A DNA stretch of 64,000 nucleotides from Macrostomum lignano (Eukaryota), in the NCBI GenBank assembly GCA_002269645.1, contig NIVC01000889.1, positions 62,001-126,000 on the forward strand, in the 5' to 3' direction. The translations under genes and the position numbers were made by a program. This document shows, in pieces, positions 8,532 to 63,111 of this stretch; position 1 is the stretch's first letter; each line of letters starts with the position of its first letter. The notes under the pieces were generated by a model. That model was not told where the DNA came from. It did not search any database and worked only from the letters and a program-made list of their open reading frames with translations.

Positions 8532-34298
<25,767 letters not shown>

Positions 34299-34450: not shown

Positions 34451-34944
34451 GGTGAAGGAGCAATTCACGTGAAATGATACAGGTAGTAATAACCACAGAC
34501 TAATTTAGAATTTTAAAAATCAAAAACACATCTTTCTGCAGAGCAATATTTTAAGAATCAAGAGTCCCTCAGTCAAGCGCCTTTTTGATTTCTTTTTTGA
34601 AGTAACTTTTTGTTTCACGCTTTTGAATTTCGACTGTGGGCGTTAAACTCCTGCTTTTCGCTGCACAGCTACATCTAGGAGCTACTGATTCCTAAGTTTT
34701 GAATGTCCTTCACCTTCTCTCTAATTGCTCTTCTGTCTCTTCCCTTTCGCTTGTGCACTATAGTATTCTCTCTGTGATCTTTAGCCTCTCTGCCTCTCCC
34801 TCTTCCTCGCTCTCCCTCTCCCCATCTCTCTCTGTCTCTCTCACTCATCTCTTACACCTCTCACTCCCTCTCACTCCCTCTCACTCATCTCTCACTCCCT
34901 CCCGATCGACAGCCGCAAATATACAAAAACTATAGTAATCTTAA

Positions 34945-35153
34945 GCATGTAATGGTGGACTCAGCACGCCTGTGTAGCATGAGACAGACCAGCCTACGAG
35001 TCAAGGTCTCAATCCAACACACCTGCATCCCCTCAATTCTGGTGCAGGAATGGCAGGAGAACTCTCCAAGTTGACTCACAAGCCGACCCAGGGGTTCACG
35101 TCCCGCATGTGTTCAAGGCAGCTCTAGGGCTGCTGGACTGACTGGGCTCCGGC
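34945..35153 (+). ncRNA. Predicted HDV-like self-cleaving ribozyme (copy B)
   Basis: P1 GCATGT 34945-50 / GCATGT 35105-10 (G.U at position 1); P2 CCCAG 35087-91 / CTGGG 35142-46; P3 GGG/CCC around L3 TTCACGT; GT; P4 hairpin; J4/2 CTGA 35138-41; manual fold only. Confidence 0.75.
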
Positions 35154-36668
35154 GGTGCAACCCATCCGTGGCTTTGGCTTCTGTCTTTGTGCCGCTTTGG
35201 GTACGGGCTTCACCCGGAAGTGAACCTGTGAAGTGAATCAGGTACCTCTGGCCACGGCTCGAAGGAACAGGTATCACCCTCTGACCTTAACAGGGTATGC
35301 GGCCAGTCCGCATGCTCCGGGGACAGCCTTTTGTCCCCTTAAGGGCCCAGCGTAGTACCGAGCTGATGGCCCTTTGGCTCTTAGCCGGTGAGTTTCTCGG
35401 TTGCTAGCGGTCGGGCCGGTAAAGGCCTAAGCCACCCCGGTCGCCATCTTTTGGCTGGCTGTTGGCTGTTACGGCCCAGCAGCTTCTCACCTCCAGTCCC
35501 CAATCGACTTTCAGCGACTCATTGAGTATTCATTTACCTCCGACGCGTCCGAGGCCAACCGAGATTGGTACCGCGGCCCAGCCGGACATTCGCAACACCG
35601 GAACCAGTGACTCTCGTCAGCCCCTGCCGCCGCTCAGAACACTGCCGAAGTGGCTGGACAAAAGGTCGGCGGACCTCAGACCTCTACGGCGAAAGGACGG
35701 CGGACAACTGGAAACCCCGTGAAATCCACTGCTTCACTGACGAGTCCCAAATCAACTCCGCCTCTGGCTACGGCTACTGCATCGTGTCTGGAGGGAGAAC
35801 CGTGGTGACCTTCAGCACACCGGCACCTGCTCCACCGTCTTCTAGAACGAAGTTCTCGCCATCAGCTCCTGCGCCATGGAGCTGTACAATCAGCGCGTCT
35901 GGGGGAAGGAGATTACCCTCCATTCGGACAGTCAAGCGGCGATCCGCGCCCTTGAGCGCACCACCACCTGCTCGCGTACAGTTCTCGACTGCCTCGGGCA
36001 GCTCAACCGCTTAGGCGCCTCTAACAAGGATCCCCGGGCATTCGGGCCACCCCAGCAACGAGCTGGCCAAGGCTGGCTCGACCGGTTTTTTTACTGATCC
36101 CCTGCCCGTGGCCCCCAACCCCACCGCCGTTGTCACCACTCGAACCAACCAGTGGGTGGCTTCAAAGGGAGAGGTGGGCTAAAGCCCCGACTGCCGGCAA
36201 TCCCGCGACGCTGTCTCCTGTCCTTCCTCTGCTTGGACTCAACCGCAGGGACATCAGGGCTGTGACCATCGCCCTCTCAGGTCACGGCTGTTTTGCCAGG
36301 CATCGTCACCTCCAAGGAAAAATCCGTAGTTAGGAATGCTCTTCTGCCTCTCCGGTGTCGAGAATCCAGAGCACTTCATCTGTGAATGCCCCGCCTTTAC
36401 TCAGGACAGGCTCACATACCTCGGCCCAAACCCGGACCTATCCGACGTTTTCAGGCCCGAGAGTCTTTGCCAGCACGTCCGCTTCCTAAGGGCTACTGGG
36501 CGAGCGACCATCCACCTCCAGGACTCTCCGGAGGGGGGCCGCGCTGCGGACACCGCAGCACCGGCTGCCCGTGGTCGCCAGGGGTTAGTGAAATGGGAGG
36601 CAACGCCTCCTCGCTGCATCCAGATGCACGGAGCCCCTGCAGCTAAGTCAAGTCAAGTAAGTCATTGC
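34945..36668 (+). mobile_element. Internally deleted, decayed non-LTR retrotransposon (5' UTR + RNase H + Zn finger + 3' end) related to the element at 54940-60696
   Basis: 5' UTR aligns with 60420-60696; frameshifted remnants [34 protein letters not shown]; 3' end cctgcagctaagtcaagtcaagtaagtca; imperfect TSD aatcttaa / aatctttaa. Confidence 0.88.
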
Positions 36669-39600
36669 AATCTTTAAGCCACTTACATGAATTAATTGCT
36701 GTCAGTTGTCTACAGGTAATAAAAACCTGATTGAGAATCAAAGTTGGCGGCAAGTGACCGGAAAGTCACAAATGCACTGACAGCACTGGTCTGGTCAACA
36801 GTTGTTTCACAAAAAATATTTAGGGCTTATTAGAAATAAAAACACTCATTTTCTCTCACTGGTCTTGCTTTTTCTGAAAAAAATAGAAATGGCGACAGAA
36901 TTTCTGCTCTTATCTATTTTGTCAGAGAAATCTTCTCCAATGACAGTTGGAGGAATGGCTGAGCGTGACATTCCAGCCAGGCTGGTAGATTACAGTCAGC
37001 TCTTGCATTGGTTGAGCTGATTTCGAATAGCATGCACATTAATGCAAGACCAATGCACCCCGAAGTTATGAAGCGTCGAGTCTTTTTACCAGATTAAAGA
37101 AAGACTTCTCGAATTAATGGCTCAGTGTACTGGGCTATCTTGTCTTGCCATTGGATCAGTAAAATATGCATTTAGTCATCGACAATGGCGAGCTTGACGG
37201 GCCGTTTGAACTCCTGTCTAGCAATTGAAATGATTTGTGTGGAATGGAATTTATATGGTCGAGTTTAGCTGGATGTTGCGGTAGATGGGATCACAGTTAT
37301 ATTTGACTAAAACACCTGTTTAAGTATAGACATGCGACCTGGATGCATGACCACCAGTAAGCCAATGGGTGATGCAATTAATGACAAAGGATGAAGTACA
37401 TTTATTACTTGATACTTTAGCGCGGTCTACCTAAACTATAGGTAAATACTGAGGGTTTGTTTTTTACTTTTTTCATTGGAAATCAATTGTTTTTTCGAAT
37501 TAATATTATGTTTACAGTTAGCTATAACTAAAACTTTTGGTATACAGACATAAGAGAGAAGAATCCGGTATAAGTACTTGCACCCATTCTCCCACAGCGA
37601 AATTCTAGGGCAGAGGCAAAGTCAAAGAACGACGGGATCGCGAATTTACACAGTTCAATTTTTTAAAATCAAGTATCTGTTTTTTACTTGATTTCATCTG
37701 TTTAATCTAGCATTAAAATGTGAAGCATAAATATTATTACTATAATTTAAATACAATTGGTCTTTTTCACCTCTATGAAAGACAATAAAAAATGTATATT
37801 TGTTTTTTCCTCAGCGAAAATTCAACTACTGTTCAGGTGTGCACGTGCAAATAAATCTGCGTAAATTTACAAAGTAAAGCAACTTAATTAGAGTAAAAAT
37901 ACATGTGAATATTGGACAAGTTGAGCTATTTTGCATTAAAAGCACTATGACTATGAGTAAGGATTTTGTTGTATAAACCCTTACTTCTTGGACATTTGAA
38001 TATCATTCGTTTGCGTAGAAAACATTGATTACGAATCATGACATCCCACCCTATGCTTATATGGGAATAGGAAACACTTATATAAATTGAAATACTCAAT
38101 CACATTATTCATTTTTTATTACATAGCATTGTTCAACCTCGAGGGCTTTTGATTCAAATCAAATAAATACAGGCCTAGCGGGTAAATCTCAAATTGAAAT
38201 ATACGTAAGTTATAAACAAATTTTTTCTTTCAGCATGAATTTAATTGTTAAACCAGAAGTATTTGTACATAAATTTAACTTTTATTTATAAAAAACTGAT
38301 TGAAAAATGTGTCTTTAAACTTTTAGCCAGAGCTTATGCTTTTATCGTGGCGATAGCGACCGAAAACGTATTTTTCTGACTTGTACTTTAAGTACGTTTT
38401 TTTGTTTCATAACGCTCTTTTGTGTACGTGTACTATTTTTGTCTATGGGACAATGACTGAAAATATAGGGGAAAACCTTTATCTGTGAGCTTGTGGATAT
38501 TTTACGGCTGTGTTTTCAATATTTATGAACTTATTTAGCCCTGTCTTAATTGCATGACACTTGTCTACTGTTGAAAAATTCCTGTAAGGTGTAGGTTTTC
38601 TGATAAACAACGCCAAACATTTTGATCTTTAGTGATTCATTCTTTCAGAGACATTTTAAATATTGTTATTTTGTTTTATCTGCGACTGTCAATGCATTGT
38701 TACTTACTTATGCCTATTGATGTTACATTTTGACTTTTTTCATGAGCACAAAATTTCCTGTAAGGTGTAAGTTTACTCAGCTCATAAGCATGTAAATGTT
38801 CCCAAAACTTGTTATTATGTAGAAAAATACTAAACAAAGAGTAGTTTTTTATTGCATGTTCTTGTGATTTTACTAAAGAAGTATAGACCTTATTAAGTTC
38901 ATTATATGGGTTTTTACCATTTATAGCCAACTAACATACTTAAGTAAGCAGTTTGTTTATTTTTGTATGAAAATCTTTGATGAATTCGCTTGTAATGATA
39001 TTCAATTTTGATCTTATGTGTATATTTTGAGCTCTAATGTTTGGTAATCCATATAAATATTCTAATTTGTTTTTGCCAATGTATTTAATATATTCCTCCA
39101 ATGTTATCATATTTGAATGCCTATTTGGGCTAGCAAAAGACAATAGGTATGGCAGGAACAGGAACCCTTAGAAACAGTTTGCATGGTTAGGAGAAAGCAA
39201 AAAGAATCCTGGTATTGCATACTTTTATTGTATTTAATGACACCTTAGAAAGCCTTTTTACTCATAATTAGGAAGCACAATCTATCTACTTCTATTTGTA
39301 TTTATATCTCAATATCTGTGTGTAGCAGTATATGTTTACCTTGCAATTTGAATGCCATATCTATTATTTCTATTTAGTCATTTTCAATTGTACTCTGCTA
39401 TCTTGGTATTCATTTACAAAAATACAAAGTGAGAGTCTATCTGTCTATTTGTAAATTTTGGCAATTTTCAATGTAGACATTCCTAAAATTACTACAGTTA
39501 TTTTCTTTAAATTGATACCAGATAACATTAAGATGATAATACCTCATTCTTATATGGTTTCTATTTTCTACAATACACAAATTTACTTCAAAATTCATTT

Positions 39601-52676: not shown

Positions 52677-55600
52677 TCAGAAGGTCACAAGCAATAAAAG
52701 TGCAAGAATAACGGCAGCAGCTGTCAACATGAAGGCAATGTGCCGCCTGCGACGGTAACTCGCTGCGCTGTTTAGATGCTGGACTACAGAATCTGGTCGC
52801 TCGTCAGCTGTTGCACCTTCACCACTGGCCGTTGTCGGCTGTTTCGAATGTTGCCTGGTCACCATCGGCATCGCCTGGCCAGCCGGGAGGTCGCCGGTGC
52901 CGTGAATCAGCAGCGACCAGCTGTGCAGGGTGGCTGCGGGACGGGATGAACCAAATTCATGCAATGTACCGAGGACTTTTTTTGAGGCAGGGGGGTTGTG
53001 TGCACCCTGGCGCACTTTAAGCGACATAGGCACACAACCGGCGAGAGGCATTACTGCCCATTCCGCCGACTCCCCTGAGCTGGCACACAAGCGCGCGGAT
53101 ACGTACGCAGGCACACACTCACACAGTAGTGTACAGCGGCCCTAACTTTATATTATCGTTAGGCATGTACACTTCACTGCGCCTTGGGGGGTTGGCTCTC
53201 AAGGCCGTTAATTGCACGAGCAGAGCCAAGCCGAGATTCCAATTCAGCCCCAAATTAATGTGACTGCACTTGGAATCGAGCCTGGGTCGCTGGCACACCA
53301 GAGCAGCTGAAAATCATCTCGCTTGGAGGGTGGAACTTTTGACTGAGTAAATAAGAAAGGCACAGCATATCAAAAGATCAACATTGGGTTTGTCTCCATC
53401 AAAAGCAATGACAAATTTTGTATTGACCTAAATGTATCTCCCTCATGTCTTTTTTAGGTCAAATCCACCTCAAATTTTACAAGAAACGTAGTATCCCGTC
53501 CTTCTTCCGTACTTCAGTAGTCCTTGCAATGTTCATGTAATTAGACCACGCTTTGAGCTCCTGCTGCAAAATTAATACCCACTCTAAATCATAAACACAG
53601 GTGAGACAACGTTTGACTAATGCATTACAAAACAACCTGACCGTGAAGAACCACTTCTGTACGTGTGAACTAATAATAACAATAATATACATGAGCTGCC
53701 TCAAAAGTATCTCACTCACCTAAGCACCCGTCGCAGCGAATGACGAGCTGCCACGTGCCTCTGGAAGGCTCGCCCCAATTATGCACGGTCATAAATGGCC
53801 ATTGGTGAAAGCCGCCTGGGTTCTGGAGCGGCAACGTTTGGGCGCGGCGGCTTTGTTAGATTTTTATCTAAAGTGTGTCTTTCATCAACCCCATGCTCAT
53901 GCGGGGCAGAGCAACTCAGCGCCACGGACCCCCGGTTCGATCCCGTGCGCGGCCCACATTCATTCTTGGGGAGTTGGTTGTCGCCAACCAACCCCCCAAG
54001 GCACGGAGAGTGTACATGCCTGACTGATTAGAAAGCCAAGGCTGCTGTACACCCTGTGTGAGCGAGTGTATGAGTGCGTGCCTGCGTACACTATCCACAC
54101 GCTTGAATGTGCTCAAGAGTCCGCGGAACAGGCAGAACCGTCACAGAGCTATCGACGAAGACGCTGTGCCAGGGTGTTCACATTCCCGCTTTTCATCCAT
54201 CCTCACCCCAGGCATCCCCAAACTCGCCTTGTCCTTCGGCCTCCGGCTGAGCAGCTGGCTGACCGTGCCCAGCGGCGAGTGCAGCCACATCTGCACACCG
54301 CCCCGTCGCGTGGCCGTTAGCGCCACCCTGACCTGCACGTGCTCAACGAAGGCCACCTCCCTACTGGGGCTCAGACTGGCGCATCCGTCGGTTGCGAGTC
54401 GAAATGTCCGCTCGAAGCCGTCCTCAACGCTAACCGAGAGGCCCTCCTGGCCGCCCGCGTCGCAGCTGCGCAGCCGCGGCACCGAGCGCCAGGTCCGGGC
54501 CAGCCGGACCATCGCCAGCGCGTCCATCAGGCCGTAGCCGAACTCGTGCGACACCTTTTTACCGACGCCGTTGATTCTCCAGGTGGTGCGCAGGTAATCT
54601 GACGGATTTGACGAGCGCACGGTCAGGTGTTGAACGTCGCGCCAGCCGAGGCCCGGGTTGGCTGACAGGGCGAGCGACACGATGCCGGCAGCGATTGGGG
54701 CGCTGGCGCTGGTGCCGGTGTGGTTCTCCGTGCACCGGCCGTGCAGGTCGGTGGTCACCATGGCTCGCTCCTGGAGGCCGCTGTCGCCGCTGGGTTGGCA
54801 AGAAACGGACGGGAACAGGGGCTGAGTTTTAAACAAAGTGCGAAAGTGCTCAAACGTCAGCACACTGTATGAATGGTTGAGAGCTGCTCAAACGTCAAGA
54901 CACTGTATGAATGGTTGAGAGCTGCTCAAACGTCAGCACTTGACTTACTTGACTTAGCTGCAGGGTGGTCCGTAGACACAGCGGGGAGGCGAGGGTCGCC
55001 CATTCCGCTAGCCCCTGAAGGCCCGCAGACAGGCAGAGGCGTGGGGCCGGTCAGGGTGGTCCGCCGGTCCGTCCTGCAGCGTGATCTTCCGTTGGGAAGA
55101 AACTGGCTCGTCTAGTCGCCCGAAGGAACTGGATGAGCCGTGGGATGCTGTCGGGCTGGCAAACCTCGTCAATGGACGGGTTCGGCCCGAGGTAGCGTAG
55201 CCGGTCTCTGTTAAAGAAAGGGCAGTGACAGACAAAGTGCTGAGCATCTTCATTGTCGCACTCGCAAAAGGGGCAAATTTCGCTCTCGAGGTCGCCTCGG
55301 AGGAAGCAGTGCCTGGCGAGGTAGCCATGGCCGGTAAGGGTCATGACAAGGGCTCGAATATCCTTCCGATTCTGGTTCAGAAGGATGTTTCTGAGCCTGT
55401 GAGACGGGCAAGGAACCGCGGCACGAGATTGCCGGCAGTTTTGGGTGCCCGCCCATCTGTCCCTGTGGAGGGAGTCAGCCCAGTCGTCGATCTGACGATT
55501 GATGACTGTCAAGGGCATAGGGACCAGGGGGGCAGGGCCGAAAAAAGAGCCAGAGCCGCCCCTCTTGGCGAGGGTGTCTGCCAGCTCGTTCCCCGGAAAC

Positions 55601-58600
55601 CCTGCGTGCCCTGGGATCCACTTCAGCCTGACAGTATTGCTTCTGGCCAGGAGGTTGAGCTGCCGGGCGCAGTCGGCGACTGTCCGGGAGTTCGTTGTGG
55701 TGTGGCAAAGGGCCTGTAAGGCCGCTTGGCTGTCGGAGTGGATGACAATAGTCTTTCCTCTCGTAACCTTGGCGTTTAGCTCTGCAGCGCAAGAGCTGAT
55801 GGCAAGGACTTCGTTCTGGAAGACTGTGGAGAGTCTACCAGTGTGCTGGGCATGCGTGGCAATTACGCGGCCGTTGATGATGATGCAGACCCCAAAGCCG
55901 GCGCGACCGTCTTTGATGGATCCGTCCGTGTAGCAATGGACCTCCTGGAAATTCCAGTGGTCATTGGCAGCATCCCTAGAGGGGATGGTGACCTTGTAGC
56001 GCTGAAAGAGGTTGAGAGTGCGGGGTTCGCCGTCAGATAGGACGTGGAGCCCGCCGCTGTCTCTCAAGTCCTTGAGGCAGAGGTCAGCGTGGGGCAGAAG
56101 CTTGCGCTTAGCCATGGCCCTATGGGGCTGGATTCGAATGCCAGCGTCAGCTAGACGGCGGGCAGTCTTAGCCGCTTCCCTGCGGACAAAGATGTCCAGC
56201 GGAGGAATGTTGAGGAAGGCGTTGAGGCCATCGTAAGGAGCAGACGGAGGGGCGCTCATGATCGTGCGACAAGCGCGCCCTTGCGCTCTCCTGAGAGCCT
56301 CTAGACAGGTCTTTATCTGCAGGGCGCTAGCCCAGATCAGGCCGCCATACGAGATAGCGGGCCTAACCATTGCAGTGTAGATCCACCAGAGGCGCTTGGG
56401 GTGAGCCCCCAGGTGGTGCCGACGGCCCTGCGCAATTGCGCGAGGACTGCGAAGGCCTTTTTGGCTTTTGTTTGAACGTGGGGAGACCAGTTCAGCCTGT
56501 GGTCCAGGGTAATACCCAGACATTTAGTCTGCTTGCAGAAGGGGATTTCCCTTCCGTAAAGCGTGAGCGGCCGAATCTGCCACTTGGTCCTGCTGGTGAA
56601 CATGATCGCTGCGGTCTTAGTCTCAGAGAGCCTTAAACCACAGCGGTCCGCCCATTGCTCAGCAGCGTAGATGAAGTTCTGAAGAAGGTCCCTGAGGGTA
56701 TCAGGGGACGGACCAGATGCCACCGCGGTGACATCGTCCGCATATCCAACTTTCAGAATGGGGTCAGGCCGAACATCCCGGAGGAGCTCATCATGACCAT
56801 ATTCCAGAGAACTGGAGACAGCACCCCACCTTGCGGGCTACCTTTGCAGACGGGGACCGTCCTCTGGTAGCCCAGCAGACTGGCGGTGGCCGTGCGATGG
56901 CTGATCATGTACATGATCCATCTGGTGAGATGTGAGTGCGTTAGCCTCTCACAAAGAGCTCTTCGGAACGCCTCAAAGAGGACGTTATCGAAGGCGCCAA
57001 TGATGTCCAGGAAGATCCCCAGAGCAAAGCCACTACCAAGCACGGCCTTCTCGAGTTTATCGACCAGGACGTGCAGCGCGCTTTCAGTGGAGCGACCCGC
57101 CCGAAAAGCGTGCTGGTTCTCGCTGAGAGGTTTGTTCTTCAGCTCAACAGAGAGAAGGCGCCAAAGCACCAGTCTCTCCATCAGCTTGACCAGGGAGGAG
57201 GTCAAGCTGATCGGTCTGAAGGATTTGATAGAATGGTAGTCCGGGCGGCCTGGCTTAGGGATAAAGATCACCTTTGCCTCGGTCCATGCCTGCGGGACAT
57301 AACCAAGCGTGATGCATGCCCGAAGAAGGCTGCAAAGTTTGCGCAGGAAGCCTGGGCATTTAACCGCCTCTCTTAGAAGGGCCGGTACAATGCCGTCGGG
57401 TCCTGGGGCTTTGAAAGGCTTGAAGGAATTTGCCGCTCTCACAATGCGGTCCTCCGTGATGATAGATGCAGCCAGCGCGTGACCTCCCTCCGAGTGATCC
57501 GGAGTGGTCTGGTTAGCTGGCTCGTTAGGGAAAAACGCAGTGAGCATTACATCAAGCGTTTCCCCTGGGTTGTCCGTGGACGTACCGTCGGTGCGTTTGA
57601 CCGAGGAGAGCTTAGACATTTTGTCCAGCGTGAGCGCTTTCACAACTCTGGAGGTGGGGCGTGAGCCCTCTAGCTCCTCACAGTATTGTCGCCATTTTTG
57701 AGCCTTTGCATTCCTAACCTGCCTTTTAAACTCATGAATTGCTTCATGATAGGCGGTTTGGTCTGCAGGGCTCTTAGTTTTAGTTGCTCTGCGGTGGAGT
57801 CTCTTAGCCCTGCGACGGAGGTTGCCGAGCTCGGGATTCCACCACGGCGCCGATTTTTTCCCTTTATAGGCTTTTAAAGGGCAGGACGCCTCAAAGGCGG
57901 CGGTTAGCGTCTCTGTCAAAACAGTCGCGCACTCATCCGCCTCTCGGCACGACGTGATCGTGGATGGTTGGCCAGGAGACCGATGGAATTCCTTCAGGGC
58001 GAGCCCGAAGGTTTCCCAATCCGTATTTCTGGCGTTCCGTCTCCACATAACACGAGTTGCGCTACGCGCGGCCATTAGGTTGAAGGAGATGAACTTGTGA
58101 TCCGATAGTGAGGACACTGGAAGCACCCGCCACGCCCCAATACTCTGGTAGAGTCTGGGCGTTGCGAGCGTAGCGTCGATCACCTCCGACCACCGTCCGT
58201 TGTCAAAGGTAGGGGTGGACCCAGAGTTGCAGAACTCGAGGGTCGTAGAGGCAACGTAGGCTAGGAGGTCTTCGCCTCTCTGATTAATGCCAGTGCTGCC
58301 CCAGTGAGTGTGGTGGGCGTTGATGTCGCCGGCAACCATGAGCTCGTAGTTTTTGGCAGAGCAGAGCTCTACCAGCGTAGCGAGGGCTCTGGGGACGACC
58401 GCAGCATCGCCTGGTAGGTAAACCGAGGCAATGAGGGTGGTCTTCCCAGGAAGAAGGTCCTCGGATTGGATGACGCAGATGTCCCTGTTGGACAGGTCCG
58501 ATCTGAGCCACGCACTGAGCGTTTTGCTCGCAAAGATGCAAGCTCTGGGAGGCTGGTTGGCCTCGCGAGGGTAAGTATAAAAACAATTGTAGCCAGCAGG

Positions 58601-61600
58601 GGCGTTTTGAGGCTTACCTCTGAGAGTCCAGGGTTCCTGGACGAGGATGAGCCCCGGCTTGTCGAGCTCGGCGTAACGCATAAGGTTGACCGAGGCTGCG
58701 ACGCAGTGCTGCAGATTAATCTGCAGGCAATGGATTCCCTGGTTGCTGATCATTATCACGCAGTTGGGGAATCGTTGAGCAGGTCATCCTCCTCCTTTTC
58801 AGTGGTGGGTGACCCGCAGACCTCCATGGGAGTTTCAGCGTCCTCAGCAGTTAGGGTGGCTGTGGAGTCCTCCGCGGACGTGAGCCCAGCGTGGACGTTA
58901 CCGTCGCCTCTCCTGCGTGCTTCGGTGCTGTCACTGCCCGTCCCCTCTGCCTCGTCGGTCAGGTCGATGCGGGTGGCGCCAGCCTCCTGGTGAGTCACAG
59001 ACTCGAACCAGTCGGTCGGAGCCTCCCCGCTTAGAGTCTGGCCTTCTGGCTGTTGGGGTGGAGCGCGAGAAGCGCGGGCCCGCTCACGATGCGCACGAAG
59101 GTTCTTGGCCTGGTCCAGCGCGCGCTGGATCAGGCCGGACCTCCGGGTGCTCCTGGCGGGTCTGCGATTGCGATTTCCGGTTTCAGCAGCGCGAACTGCC
59201 TTACCGGGCATAGGATCGGCCGTTTGCCTCGGCTTCTTTGCCGGAGGAGCCTGGGCCCCAGTTCCGGTTTCGGAAGCTTTGGCATTCTTGGCTTCATCAG
59301 CTTTCCGCTCCTCGCAACGGAGGATGGTCAGCTGAGTCAGACCAATATGAATTGTGGACTTAGGCGGCAAGCGCTTAGCCCAGTCATCAGAGAGCCCTAG
59401 GATCACCGTAGCCCCCTTCTCCTTGCGGGAAGTGGCGTGGTGTAGGAGCCCGTTGACCTTAAGGTCGGGGTGCAGCTTTAGCAATATTTGCCTAAGCTGA
59501 TCTCCGGACTTAATGGCACTGCCGGCCGGGATCCAGACGCGAAAGCGCTGGGTCTTCTGTCGTTCGCCCTCGCTGGCGAAGACGAGCTTGCCGAGCTTCT
59601 TGGGCCAGTTCAGCTTTGGCAGAAGCTCGCGTAGATTGCGGCTGCTCTCCTCCGAGCTGCACCAGATGAAGATGCAGCCGTCGGTCTTGGCAGACTTGAC
59701 CACGCTCACAGGGCGGCCCGCCAGGAGCTGGTCGATGAGCGCAGCATCGATGGTGCGCCAGGCACTGTCGAGCTCGTCGGCCGTGAGGTCCTGCTCTTCC
59801 CCGAAGACGATGACCGCCGGTTGGAGCTTGACCTTTGAGGCGTAGTTGGTGGCGGCGGTTCCCGAAGGCCCGGCCGCGCTTGTAGCAGGTATACTGGGTG
59901 GCTCACCAGCGGGGGTTGTATCCTGGGGGGCAGGGGTTGCTGTGGTTCCTTTCGGCCCAACAGCAGCCTCGCCCTCCCTAGGTTCCCCTTCCGCCGGTGG
60001 CCGGCCCGCAGTACCCCGTAGTCGCCGTCGCCGCTCGTTGCGGCGTTGGTTGCGGGTGCGTCGGGCTTCAGCGGAGGGCCCGGTTGCGCGTGCGGGCATG
60101 TCACCAGCCGAGCCGGCGGCAAGCCCATCTGCCCCCGGTGGGGCGGCGCTGGTGCCAGAGTCACCGGCCGGAGTTGCCGGGGCCCCGGCTTCAGCGGGGG
60201 TTAAAGAGGCGGATGACGCCATAGCTGAAAGCGGGAAGGAGTGAGCTGAGTCACAAAAGAAAGAGGAAAGAAGAAAAAGAAAAGGACCGCTAGCGACCGG
60301 ACAACCCCCCGGCCTTCCAGCCCATCGGCACGGTCAAACACCTTAGGCATTAGGGGGTACGTTAAGCAGTACCACGGCCTGCAGGCTGGCAAGCCAGACC
60401 CGCATACCCAAATTCGGCCGAAGCCACTGGATGGGTCGCCAGCGTCGGAGCCCAGTCTGTCCAGCAGCCCTAGGGTCTGCCTTGAACACACGCGGGGACG
60501 AGTACCCTGGGTCGACTTGTGAAACAGCGTGAGGGGGGGGGGGTCTGCGGCTGCCAGTGGCAAATAGCGGGTGCAGACCTCCCTCTCCAGCCTTGACCTG
60601 CTGAATATAGGGGCAGGCGTGAAGCATCGCAGACCGTAGCCCTTAGGCCTGGTCTGTCTCATACTTCACTGGCGTGCTGAATACACCTTCGCGTGCAAAC
60701 GTCAGCACACTGTATGAATGGATGGTTGAGAGCTGCTCAAAAGTCAGCACACTGTATGAATGGATGGTTGAGAGCTGCTCAAACGTCAGCACACTGTATG
60801 AATGGATGGTTGAGAGCTGCTCAAAAGTCAGCACACTGTATGAATGGATGGTTGAGAGCTGCTCAAACGTCAGCACACTGTATGAATGGATAGTTGAGAG
60901 CTGCTCAAAAGTCAGCACACTGTATGAATGGATGGTTGAGAGCTGCTCAAACGTCAGCACACTGTATGAATGGATGGTTGAGAGCTGCTCAAACGTCAGC
61001 ACACTGTATGAATGGATGGTTGAGAGCTGCTCAAAAGTCAGCACACTGTATGAATGGATGGTTGAGAGCTGCTCAAAAGTCAGCACACTGTATGAATGGA
61101 TGGTTGAGAGCTGCTCAAAAGTCAGCACACTGTATGAATGGATAGTTGAGAGCTGCTCAAAGGTCAGCACACTGTATGAATGGATGGTTGAGAGCTGCTC
61201 AAAGGTCAGCACACTGTATGGATGGTGAGAGCTGCTCAGCAGCCAAAGCACTGCTCGGTAGTCGTTAATAGTAGCCTAAAACAGCAACAGACTCAAAACT
61301 GACAAGTCCCAACCTGGAGTACGTAGCCGCTAGCGTGGAAGAGCAGGACTCGCTGTACCAGGGCACGGTCCCGGACTCGGACACAGCGCCAACGGACAGG
61401 GTGTAGATGCTGTTCGTGTAGCCGTCCGTGTTACAGTTGTCCTCTCGGCCGCCGTTGCCGCTGGCCCAGACGAACACGGAGCCAAGGCCCTGTCTGCCAC
61501 GGGCGACGCCAAGCGAGAACGCCTTCTGGGTCAAGCGGCCGGGGCCTTCGAGTGTTGCGCCGTCGTCGCTGGGTCCCCAGCTGGACGAGTACACGTGGAT

Positions 61601-63111
61601 GTGCTGGGGCTGGTGGCCTACCGACAGGGTCTCCACTGTATCCGTGATTTCGCCATCAAGCATTCGGATGGCTGCGGAGACGGGGCAAGCATTAAACTTG
61701 ATAGCTAGCTGTCAAGCTGTCAAGCTGCCAACAAGTTAAATTAATTCGACAATGTGAAATTTCGACCTTCTGGAAGGGAACCCTAATCCATTGAAAGCCC
61801 CTAGCTTCAAATGGCTTTGATTACTAAAGGGGAAATGCTAAACAAAAAGGAATTTCCTGTCTAAAACTAGTCAGGAATCCTAGCCAAGGGAATTCCCTGT
61901 TTTTGATTATTCAGGGGAATCCTAAGCACTGGGAATTCCCTGTCTTTGATTATTCAGAGGAATCCTAAGCAAAGAAAATTCCCTGTCTTCGATTAGCTCG
62001 TATTGAGGGGAATCCTAACAAATGGGAATTCCCTGTCTTCGATTATTCAAGGGAATCCTAAGCAATGGGAATTCCCTGTCTTCAATTATTCAGGGAAATC
62101 CTAAGCAAAGAAAATTCCCTGTCTTCGATTATTGAGGGGAATCCTAACAAATGGGAATTCCCTGTCTTCGATTATTCAAGGGAATCCTAAGCAATGGGAA
62201 TTCCCTGTCTTCAATTATTCAGGGAAATCCTAAGCAAAGAAAATTCCCTGTCTTCGATTATTGAGGGGAATCCTAACAAATGGGAATTCCCTGTCTTCGA
62301 TTATCCAAGGGAATCCTAAGCAATGGGAATTCCCTGTCTTCAATTATTCAGGGAAATCCTAAGCAAAGAAAATTCCCTGTCTTCGATTATTAAGGGGAAT
62401 CCTTAAAATTGGGAATTCCCTGTCTACGATCAGTCAGGGGAATCCTAAGCAATCGGAAATCCCTGTTTTCAATTATTCAGGGAAATCCTAAGCAAAGAAA
62501 ATTCCCTGTCTTCGATTATTGAGGGGAATCCTAACAAATGGGAATTCCCTGTCTTCGATTATTCAAGGGAATCCTAAGCAATGGGAATTCCCTGTCTTCA
62601 ATTATTCAGGGAAATCCTAAGCAAAGAAAATTCCCTGTCTTCGATTATTCAAGGGAATCCTAAGCAATGGGAATTCCCTAATCAATTGCTAATAATTGGT
62701 CTGTGGGAATCCACTGGAGATTCCTCCGCCTCTAGTCAGTCAGAAAGGAAATCCACCAGGAGGAGATCCGCTACCTCCAATCCTGGACCGAAAAGCCACG
62801 CCCGGGATGCAGATGGAGTTATTGGCCTGTGCAGCGATCTGACCGGCGCAGCGAGTTCCGTGTCTGGAAATTTTTTTCGTTGATTATAATTATTATGTTA
62901 TGATTATTATGTTTAAAAAATGGTGTACTTCGCTCAATAAAACAAGCTAGAAAATATAAGTCAGATTTTCCTCATCTTTCTACTATTAGTATAAGAAATG
63001 GATTTTTTCAAACAAAAAAAAGAAATCGACCAACTTGTTTTCGTCTTTGGCTGTTGGCCGATAAGTGGGATCCGGGTCGTTGCCGTTCACGTCGAATGAA
63101 GCTCTGGAGTC
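52677..63111 (-). CDS. Furin/kexin-type proprotein convertase (S8B), 3' part; exons 63035-63111, 62775-62863, 61314-61671, 54228-54789 (GC donor), 53720-53822, 52677-52933; 5' exons lie beyond the window
   Basis: [12 protein letters not shown], catalytic His [21 protein letters not shown], oxyanion WASGNGG, catalytic Ser [20 protein letters not shown]-domain EHVQVRV...RRG...[16 protein letters not shown]; C-terminal hydrophobic stretch. Confidence 0.93.
53108..53310 (-). mobile_element. SINE-like dispersed repeat, family B
   Basis: B-box-like ggctcgattcc head plus the shared body ccaaggcgcagtgaagtgtacatgcctaacgat...gggccgctgtacact. Confidence 0.65.
53895..54082 (+). mobile_element. tRNA-headed SINE-like repeat, family B
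   Basis: B box ggttcgatccc followed by a body matching 8870-8990 and 53108-53310. Confidence 0.7.
54848..54939. repeat. Left stump of an intronic minisatellite (38-bp variant) interrupted by the retrotransposon
   Basis: gtcagcacactgtatgaatggttgagagctgctcaaac, about 2.5 copies. Confidence 0.9.
55051..58753 (-). CDS. Retrotransposon ORF2: AP endonuclease, reverse transcriptase, RNase H, CCHC-type finger; two 1-bp deletions (~56791 and 56398-56401)
   Basis: QINLQH, LVQEPW, GDINAHH, IDATL, LSDH (APE); [38 protein letters not shown] (RT); [28 protein letters not shown] (RNase H); CPFC...HFVCHC. Confidence 0.93.
58756..60222 (-). CDS. Retrotransposon ORF1 (488 aa): disordered ends and a central folded domain resembling DUF4780 of LOA-type ORF1; no zinc knuckle seen
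   Basis: Intact ATG-to-TGA ORF directly upstream of ORF2; the domain assignment is by eye only. Confidence 0.8.
   Translation of the reverse strand: MASSASLTPAEAGAPATPAGDSGTSAAPPGADGLAAGSAGDMPARATGPSAEARRTRNQRRNERRRRLRGTAGRPPAEGEPREGEAAVGPKGTTATPAPQDTTPAGEPPSIPATSAAGPSGTAATNYASKVKLQPAVIVFGEEQDLTADELDSAWRTIDAALIDQLLAGRPVSVVKSAKTDGCIFIWCSSEESSRNLRELLPKLNWPKKLGKLVFASEGERQKTQRFRVWIPAGSAIKSGDQLRQILLKLHPDLKVNGLLHHATSRKEKGATVILGLSDDWAKRLPPKSTIHIGLTQLTILRCEERKADEAKNAKASETGTGAQAPPAKKPRQTADPMPGKAVRAAETGNRNRRPARSTRRSGLIQRALDQAKNLRAHRERARASRAPPQQPEGQTLSGEAPTDWFESVTHQEAGATRIDLTDEAEGTGSDSTEARRRGDGNVHAGLTSAEDSTATLTAEDAETPMEVCGSPTTEKEEDDLLNDSPTA
60444..60696 (-). ncRNA. Predicted HDV-like self-cleaving ribozyme at the element 5' end (copy A)
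   Basis: P1 GCACGCG (60696-60690) / CGCGTGT (60494-60488); P2 CCCAG (60511-60507) / CTGGG (60455-60451); L3 TACTCGT; J4/2 CAGA with candidate catalytic C at 60459; manual fold only. Confidence 0.78.
60697..61238. repeat. 42-bp intronic minisatellite, about 13 copies (right side of the insertion)
   Basis: Unit gtcagcacactgtatgaatggatggttgagagctgctcaaa(c/a). Confidence 0.95.
61860..62685. repeat. ~41-43-bp intronic minisatellite with a three-variant higher-order period
   Basis: gggaatcctaagcaatgggaattccctgtcttc.attatt units cycling through caatgg / caaagaa / caaatgg variants. Confidence 0.9.

Follow-up and report, generated by a model that had tools for sequence, protein, structure and literature searches.

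The window analysed here, i.e., the whole stretch of 64,000 nt corresponding to positions 62,001 to 126,000 of contig NIVC01000889.1 (assembly GCA_002269645.1), contains two copies of a non-LTR retrotransposon of the long interspersed nuclear element (LINE) type. Copy A is full length and comprises 5,758 nt, running from 60696 to 54939 on the minus strand, and copy B is a shortened relative on the plus strand. Both copies begin with short complementary stretches arranged in the order of the self-cleaving ribozyme of the hepatitis delta virus (HDV). We consider it probable (roughly 0.7) that in this LINE family a large HDV-like self-cleaving ribozyme is encoded by the 5′ untranslated region (UTR), with its helix P1 starting at the first nucleotide of the element, here called G1. 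The two copies and the target-site duplications (TSDs) of copy A are located as follows, with positions counted from the first nucleotide of the window.

54939–60696, minus strand: copy A (open reading frame calls, Pfam, frameshift analysis and end mapping)
60697–60707, minus strand: 5′ copy of the TSD, TGCTGACGTTT, 11 bp, directly adjoining G1 of copy A
54928–54938, minus strand: 3′ copy of the TSD, TGCTGACGTTT, 11 bp, directly after the last TAAGTCAAG of copy A
34945–36664, plus strand: copy B, an internally deleted, decayed relative of ~1.7 kb (similarity and TSD)
35703–36542, plus strand: RNase H remnant of copy B, 31% amino acid identity to copy A

The 5′ UTR of copy A is 474 nt long and is followed by two open reading frames (ORFs). 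ORF1 (60222–58756) has a weak Pfam match to DUF4780, and ORF2 encodes an APE endonuclease and a reverse transcriptase (RT), then an RNase H. The Pfam domains thus bear out the preliminary description, made from the letters of the DNA alone, of a probable LINE; the clade is resolved only as far as APE/RT/RNase H with a weakly DUF4780-like ORF1. The same description had guessed at a flatworm. This is supported by searches with ORF2 and RNase H, in which Macrostomum lignano proteins were the nearest named relatives (51–63% identity), and a flatworm origin of the element is plausible for this reason. A database search with ORF1 returned a single homologue (P0001), located on the JGI metagenome contig L001; compared with copy A, its ORF2 is 83% and its ORF1 62% identical. 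Two frameshifts split ORF2 of copy A, one near 56792 and the other near 56400–56460. The first (minus strand) is due to a single T missing from GTCATTGA in comparison with L001 (1-nt deletion). Either copy A has decayed slightly or it contains small indel errors of the assembly. At its 3′ end, copy A terminates with two units of TAAGTCAAG (54956–54939).

Copy B retains the 5′ UTR with the ribozyme candidate, the RNase H remnant and the same 3′ terminal motif as copy A, and is devoid of ORF1, endonuclease and RT. Its first ~57 nt are 81% identical to copy A, and the ribozyme core is 86% identical over 107 nt. Its organization recalls that of the SIDEs (short internally deleted elements) known from R2, and the retention of both ends suggests that these are the parts required in cis.

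As the TSDs directly adjoin the terminus of copy A, its 5′ end can be located without recourse to an RNA model. It is fixed to within 1 nt, since the G at 60696 could also extend the repeat unit of the target. Copy B is flanked by a degenerate TSD, AATCTTAA at 34937–34944 (ending at G1) and AATCTTTAA at 36669–36677; here GC is shared with the target, leaving an ambiguity of 1–2 nt across both copies. By their TSDs, the two copies are independent insertions that both start at G1, to within 1–2 nt. The earlier statement that the ribozyme defines the exact 5′ end of the element therefore stands as far as the position of G1 at the TSD boundary in both copies is concerned, with the exactness reduced to 1–2 nt.

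All pieces of the HDV-like double pseudoknot named in the preliminary description (A, 60696–60444, minus strand; B, 34945–35153, plus strand) were found in both copies at the positions given there. In the following list, P1 to P4 are helices, with a prime marking the 3′ strand, J1/2 and J4/2 are joining segments, and L3 is the loop of P3.

60690–60696, minus strand: copy A, 5′ strand of P1, GCACGCG; G1 is 60696, with predicted cleavage 5′ of it
60517–60689, minus strand: copy A, J1/2, 173 nt, a predicted closed multi-branch domain
60686–60684 with 60521–60519 and 60679–60676 with 60528–60525, minus strand: copy A, predicted closing helix of J1/2, GUG/CAC plus CAGC/GCUG
60507–60516, minus strand: copy A, 5′ strand of P2, with distal GTCG (60516–60513), a bulged A and proximal CCCAG (60511–60507)
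60495–60506, minus strand: copy A, P3, L3 and P3′, with GG (60506–60505), L3 TACTCGT (60504–60498) and P3′ CC(C)
60486–60494, minus strand: copy A, P1′ CGCGTGT (60494–60488), then GT, the P1.1 partner of A-C in L3
60460–60485, minus strand: copy A, P4 hairpin region, GGCAG...CUGCU with inner CC/GG
60456–60459, minus strand: copy A, J4/2, CAGA, with the proposed catalytic C at 60459
60444–60455, minus strand: copy A, 3′ strand of P2, with CTGGG (60455–60451), a CTC bulge and distal CGAC (60447–60444)
60406–60436, minus strand: copy A, stem ACCCA...UGGGU around a GGC-UUCG-GCC hairpin, just 3′ of the ribozyme candidate
34945–35153, plus strand: copy B, ribozyme candidate as a whole (sequence pieces, complementarity and fold)
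34945–34950, plus strand: copy B, P1, GCATGT
34951–35081, plus strand: copy B, J1/2
35082–35085 and 35150–35153, plus strand: copy B, distal P2 GCCG and P2′ CGGC
35087–35091 and 35142–35146, plus strand: copy B, P2 and P2′
35092–35094 and 35102–35104, plus strand: copy B, P3 GGG and P3′ CCC
35095–35101, plus strand: copy B, L3, TTCACGT
35105–35110 and 35111–35112, plus strand: copy B, P1′ GCATGT, then GT
35113–35137, plus strand: copy B, P4
35138–35141, plus strand: copy B, J4/2, CTGA, with the proposed catalytic C at 35138

The strands of the nested double pseudoknot (in the order P1, P2, P3, P3′, P1′, P4, P2′) are all present and complementary in copies A and B. A G1·U pair closes P1, which has 7 bp in copy A and 6 bp, two of them G·U, in copy B. 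Directly 5′ of P2′, the J4/2 segment conforms to C-N-R-A (CAGA in A, CUGA in B). L3 follows the pattern U-N-C-N-C-G-U in A, B and L001, and in all three the "GU" after P1′ allows the formation of a C-G pair of P1.1, to which an A-U pair is added in A. P3 of copy A consists of GG, or of GGG if the last G of P2 is borrowed.

Two features raise the arrangement above chance, the type of L3 and the pairing of P1. With the L3 pattern TNCNCGY included, the core descriptor yields an expectation of ~0.25 matches per shuffled window. Only copy B passes this strict version, and copy A fails it because of its P3 of two Gs. Full pairing with P1′ of copy A (CGCGTGT) is found for just 7 of the 127,987 7-mers in the window (5.5e-5), and the terminal 7-mer adjoining the TSD is among them; it pairs 7/7, closed by G1·U, with the 7 nt immediately 3′ of P3′. 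For the changed P1′ of copy B (GCATGT), the terminal 6-mer is the sole upstream partner free of mismatches. The pairing of P1 at an independently defined terminus is significant.

Further evidence comes from the comparison of the three sequences, for which the base pairs were tabulated by hand; MAFFT misplaces 1-nt indels around P2, P3 and L3 in copy B. In P1, pair 4 changes from C-G in A to U-A in B, which is compensatory, pair 6 changes from C-G to U·G, and the terminal pair 7 is the sole pair lost in B. The proximal P2 reads CCCAA(A)/(U)UUGGG in L001 vs CCCAG/CUGGG in A and B, corresponding to a double change from G-C to A-U. The distal P2 is GCCG/CGGC in L001 as in B, and GUCG/CGAC in A, a double change between C-G and U-A. 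Additionally, L001 possesses a GGG/CCC P3, the L3 sequence UUCUCGU, a P4 forming a perfect 8-bp helix, and a P1′ CGCGAGC followed by GU; the final C of this P1′ predicts a G-C closing pair. Altogether, there are three compensatory double changes (P1 pair 4, proximal P2 and distal P2), and several further one-sided changes are compatible with wobble pairing. Where one side of a pair had changed to a non-pairing nucleotide, the other side compensated in 3 of 4 cases. At 15–25% divergence this corresponds to p ~0.002, which is a rough estimate and no formal test, three sequences being too few for R-scape-type statistics. The covariation between the two copies that had been noticed beforehand is thus real (P1 pair 4, distal P2), and it amounts to only two double changes when A and B alone are compared.

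The distribution of conservation points in the same direction. Core identity between A and B is 86% vs only 31% amino acid identity in the RNase H regions, and between A/B and L001 indels are few in the core and numerous in the flanks. Conservation of the 5′ end is lowest in the first 7 nt (3/7 differ between A and B), which are still complementary to P1′.

In the unconstrained minimum-energy folds of both copies, the nest of distal P2, P2, P3 and P4 is present, and forcing P1 costs only ~2 kcal/mol. When J1/2 is folded alone, a domain is predicted in A as well as in B that closes 3–4 nt 3′ of P1 and 2 nt 5′ of P2. The minimum-energy fold of A gains a 3-bp P3 at the cost of a P2 shortened to 4 bp. 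The predicted HDV-like fold is coherent, and it is backed by the compensatory change in P2 of L001 and by the closing helix of J1/2.

Several sequence features in and around the candidate are described here in addition. A second GCACGCC, a near-repeat of the P1 strand of copy A, is conserved 20 nt inside the element (60677–60671, minus strand; 34964–34970, plus strand) and is unchanged where P1 and P1′ of copy B have changed; it may compete with P1 or serve as a decoy. In L001, GCUCGC (nt 76–81), 2 nt 5′ of P2, is fully complementary to P1′ (110–116) and is not conserved in A and B. J1/2 of copy A contains a long hairpin of G and C runs (60589–60533, minus strand), with GGAGAGGGAGGUCUGC...GCAGAC followed by a run of 11 C, which is absent from copy B. 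The UUCG stem just downstream of the candidate is conserved in A, in B (35160–35202, plus strand, with an insertion) and in L001 (~168–195), and roles in translation or protein binding are possibilities.

Self-cleavage, the catalytic residue and co-transcription are what we infer from the sequence, and together they would give the following course of events. The element would be transcribed within a longer host transcript, in which the structured J1/2 of 130–170 nt would close on itself and draw P1 and P2 together. The core would then fold, with P1, P1.1 and P4 in one stack and P2 and P3 in another, and the cytosine of J4/2 (60459 in A, 35138 in B) would catalyse scission 5′ of G1. The resulting element RNA would carry a 5′-OH and start exactly at G1; target-primed reverse transcription of this RNA would lead to insertions with G1 at the 5′ junction, as seen in A and B.

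A number of results weigh against this interpretation. A loose HDV descriptor (J1/2 ≤400 nt) matched the window hundreds of times, and the core descriptor without a sequence constraint on L3 gave 132 matches in the window vs ~115 in shuffles. Helix order alone occurs at chance frequency and is not significant; that loose HDV descriptors over-call has been the subject of a published warning (PMC4870747). Rfam searches at gathering score with the window and the loci yielded no HDV-like family, and neither did searches at E≤10 with the 401-nt region, the isolated cores and a compact arrangement of L001, the Rfam HDV-like models being narrow and unable to span a J1/2 of 170 nt. These searches gave only weak microRNA or nuoG noise, originating from the G/C-run hairpin. 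The candidate is therefore not a member of a curated HDV-like subfamily (HDV_ribozyme, CPEB3_ribozyme, drz-Agam and similar). Moreover, four more distant elements (L007–L010, 30–36% ORF2 identity) contained no HDV-like core 5′ of ORF1 with either strict or relaxed descriptors, and the folding energies of the whole regions are unremarkable (z = -1.5 and +0.4).

Other points on this side concern individual parts of the structure. Copy A offers only GG for P3 unless P2 is cut to 4 bp, as had been cautioned at the outset, and with only two Gs, the ribozyme of copy A as assembled may be impaired. A single-base loss or an assembly error in the G run of this P3 is plausible, since ORF2 of copy A likewise has at least one deletion of 1 nt. 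The cleanest core is that of copy B, although this copy is dead and internally deleted. Contig L001 begins within J1/2, so that the 5′ strand of P1 lies off the contig and P1 is uncheckable there; the C aligned with the catalytic C reads CGUG(U) instead of C-N-R-A, with a CGAA 4 nt upstream. The covariation, although real, is thin; only three sequences are available, two of them complete. The changes on both sides of P1 pair 4 are transitions at CpG. General CpG decay in copy B was considered as the cause of the P1 change and rejected, as most other CpGs of the aligned 5′ UTR are kept.

A precise 5′ end can also be obtained from an internal promoter. The conserved 5′ UTR would then be such a promoter and/or a structure for translation or packaging, the 5′ end would result from initiation at +1 as in jockey/I-type LINEs, and the HDV likeness would be incidental or the ribozyme vestigial; alternatively, promoter and ribozyme could be mixed, as in Pr77 of L1Tc. 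Precise 5′ ends of two insertions are expected equally from this explanation, which is also in keeping with the lack of an Rfam match and with the presence of several conserved 5′ UTR blocks beyond the ribozyme, including the downstream stem with the UUCG loop. In L1Tc, promoter and ribozyme coexist in one 5′ segment (PMC3185411). We nevertheless consider it unlikely: a start-site motif is expected to be conserved in sequence, whereas the first 7 nt vary most yet stay complementary to P1′, and neither the compensatory changes in P2 and distal P2 nor an L3 identical to that of Cpeb3 would be explained. It is very improbable that the HDV-like order was assembled by chance from short complementary stretches of GC-rich sequence. 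Loose descriptors matching the window as often as shuffles and unremarkable z-scores are what chance would give, but the joint occurrence of an L3-type core (~0.25 per window), a terminal P1 (5.5e-5) and three compensatory changes is far below expectation, and the core is conserved across elements with very different proteins.

The ribozyme could also use another register, with a compact P1 just 5′ of P2 that cleaves ~170 nt inside the 5′ UTR or serves as an inhibitory alternative P1. The pairing of GCUCGC (nt 76–81) in L001 with its P1′ GCGAGC (6/6) fits this possibility, as does the minimum-energy fold of copy A, in which CGCUGU from the 3′ portion of J1/2, and not P1′, is the partner of the 5′ terminus. 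At the equivalent positions of A and B, however, no more than 4 bp can form (CACA/UGUG), and these are in a different register; the compact arrangement of L001 found no match in Rfam, and internal cleavage leaves insertions that start at G1 without explanation. We therefore give this variant very little credence.

Copy A is inserted within a minisatellite with a 42/38-bp period. Upstream, the array extends over 60697–61238 with 12.6 copies of 42 bp; downstream (54847–54939), there are 2.4 copies of a 38-bp variant that has no CCAT. Since the insertion, the two array sides have therefore diverged or expanded. The upstream 42-bp repeats were also considered as 5′ monomers of the element or as the tail of another copy. 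This was rejected, as copy B does not have them and the array resumes on the 3′ side after the 11-bp duplication. The array and copy A lie between two exons of a proprotein convertase.

61265–61663, minus strand: proprotein convertase exon, Peptidase_S8 (furin/kexin-like)
54141–54863, minus strand: proprotein convertase exon, Peptidase_S8 plus P domain (furin/kexin-like)

These exons cover positions 97–194 and 219–288 of the Peptidase_S8 profile, plus the P domain, and the intron between them holds the LINE and the minisatellite. Copy A is in sense orientation within this intron and would therefore be transcribed through in the host pre-mRNA, a position compatible with co-transcription. The window is unusually rich in minisatellites; it has ~30 different tandem arrays, whose periods range between 3 and ~130 bp and several of which are longer than 1 kb (examples are 20954–22971, 24388–25686, 32467–33867 and 61874–62679). 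A strong GC skew at 32467–33867 is explained by the C-rich 30-bp array at this site.

Searches for further copies were without success. A DNA-pattern scan of metagenomes gave five matches, all of them spurious and located in high-GC bacterial coding sequence, and scans of viral contigs found none. Protein searches with ORF2 and RNase H led only to distant relatives or to M. lignano UniProt entries without DNA, and neither the ORF1 of the window nor the M. lignano protein P0008 is recorded as an encoded gene. A literature search yielded no paper that links HDV-like ribozymes with Macrostomum or with flatworm LINEs other than R2.

If the ribozyme is confirmed, HDV-like processing of 5′ ends would extend to an APE/RT/RNase H LINE family of free-living flatworms, a phylum represented in the searched literature only by the planarian R2. 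The ribozyme would also account for the defined 5′ end of these LINEs in transcripts that run through host introns, and its large, structured J1/2 would be a further natural case in which the activation of the HDV fold by peripheral domains can be studied. The conserved core can be used as an annotation marker for full-length 5′ ends of this LINE family. HDV-like ribozymes occupying the 5′ ends of LINEs, including those with long and structured J1/2, are already known, and the general picture of ribozyme-processed LINEs is unchanged. More speculatively, and in our view improbably, the element could represent the first case of a ribozyme lineage confined to RNase H-bearing macrostomid LINEs. 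The J1/2 domain and the UUCG stem would then form a multifunctional 5′ UTR that combines processing with promoter activity or cap-independent translation, and the identity with the CPEB3 active site would stem from shared retrotransposon descent rather than from convergence.

HDV-like ribozymes are carried by R2, R4, Dong, Baggins, RTE and L1Tc, with J1/2 segments of up to hundreds of nt (PMC3774820, PMC3185411). Among the R2 ribozymes, which include one from a planarian element, J1/2 measures 216–498 nt in silkmoths and P1 and P1′ are separated by more than 700 nt in the honeybee (PMC3774820, PMC4035085); apart from the catalytic C and the residues of L3, they have few conserved nucleotides (PMC3774820). 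The candidate described here resembles them in its position at the 5′ end of a non-LTR element, which it is proposed to free from a co-transcript, and in its P1 of 6–7 bp, long J1/2 and variable P4 (PMC3774820). The elements themselves differ, as R2 uses a restriction-like endonuclease, contains one ORF and inserts site-specifically into 28S ribosomal DNA, whereas the present element has two ORFs and encodes APE, RT and RNase H. The insertions lie in an intronic minisatellite (A) and an AT-rich site (B), unlike those of R2 in the 28S ribosomal DNA. R2 often cleaves upstream within the 28S gene, whereas P1 is here located wholly inside the element. Baggins1 (LOA clade) and L1Tc/ingi, which also have known 5′ HDV-like ribozymes, are set beside the present element by description; the ribozyme of L1Tc differs in being compact (77 nt) and doubling as promoter.

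Like copies A and B, the mammalian CPEB3 ribozyme possesses a "GU" after P1′ and a C-N-R-A J4/2. It differs from the candidates in being compact (~68 nt), intronic and situated outside any retrotransposon, and the Rfam CPEB3 model did not match the cores found here. L3 of copy B, UUCACGU, is identical to that of mouse Cpeb3, which had been given correctly in the preliminary description (TTCACGT) and can be read from the primer GTTCACGTCGCGGCC, located at a distance of 18 nt from the site of cleavage (PMC10919898). In the Anopheles drz-Agam-2 type, a J1/2 closed by a helix (P1.2) brings P1 and P2 together, and such a "pinch" activates large HDV-like ribozymes (PMC4908430). Both copies in the window are predicted to close J1/2 within 2–4 nt of P1 and P2 in a similar fashion, with the difference that the domain is here a multi-branch structure of 130–170 nt, as predicted by folding only.

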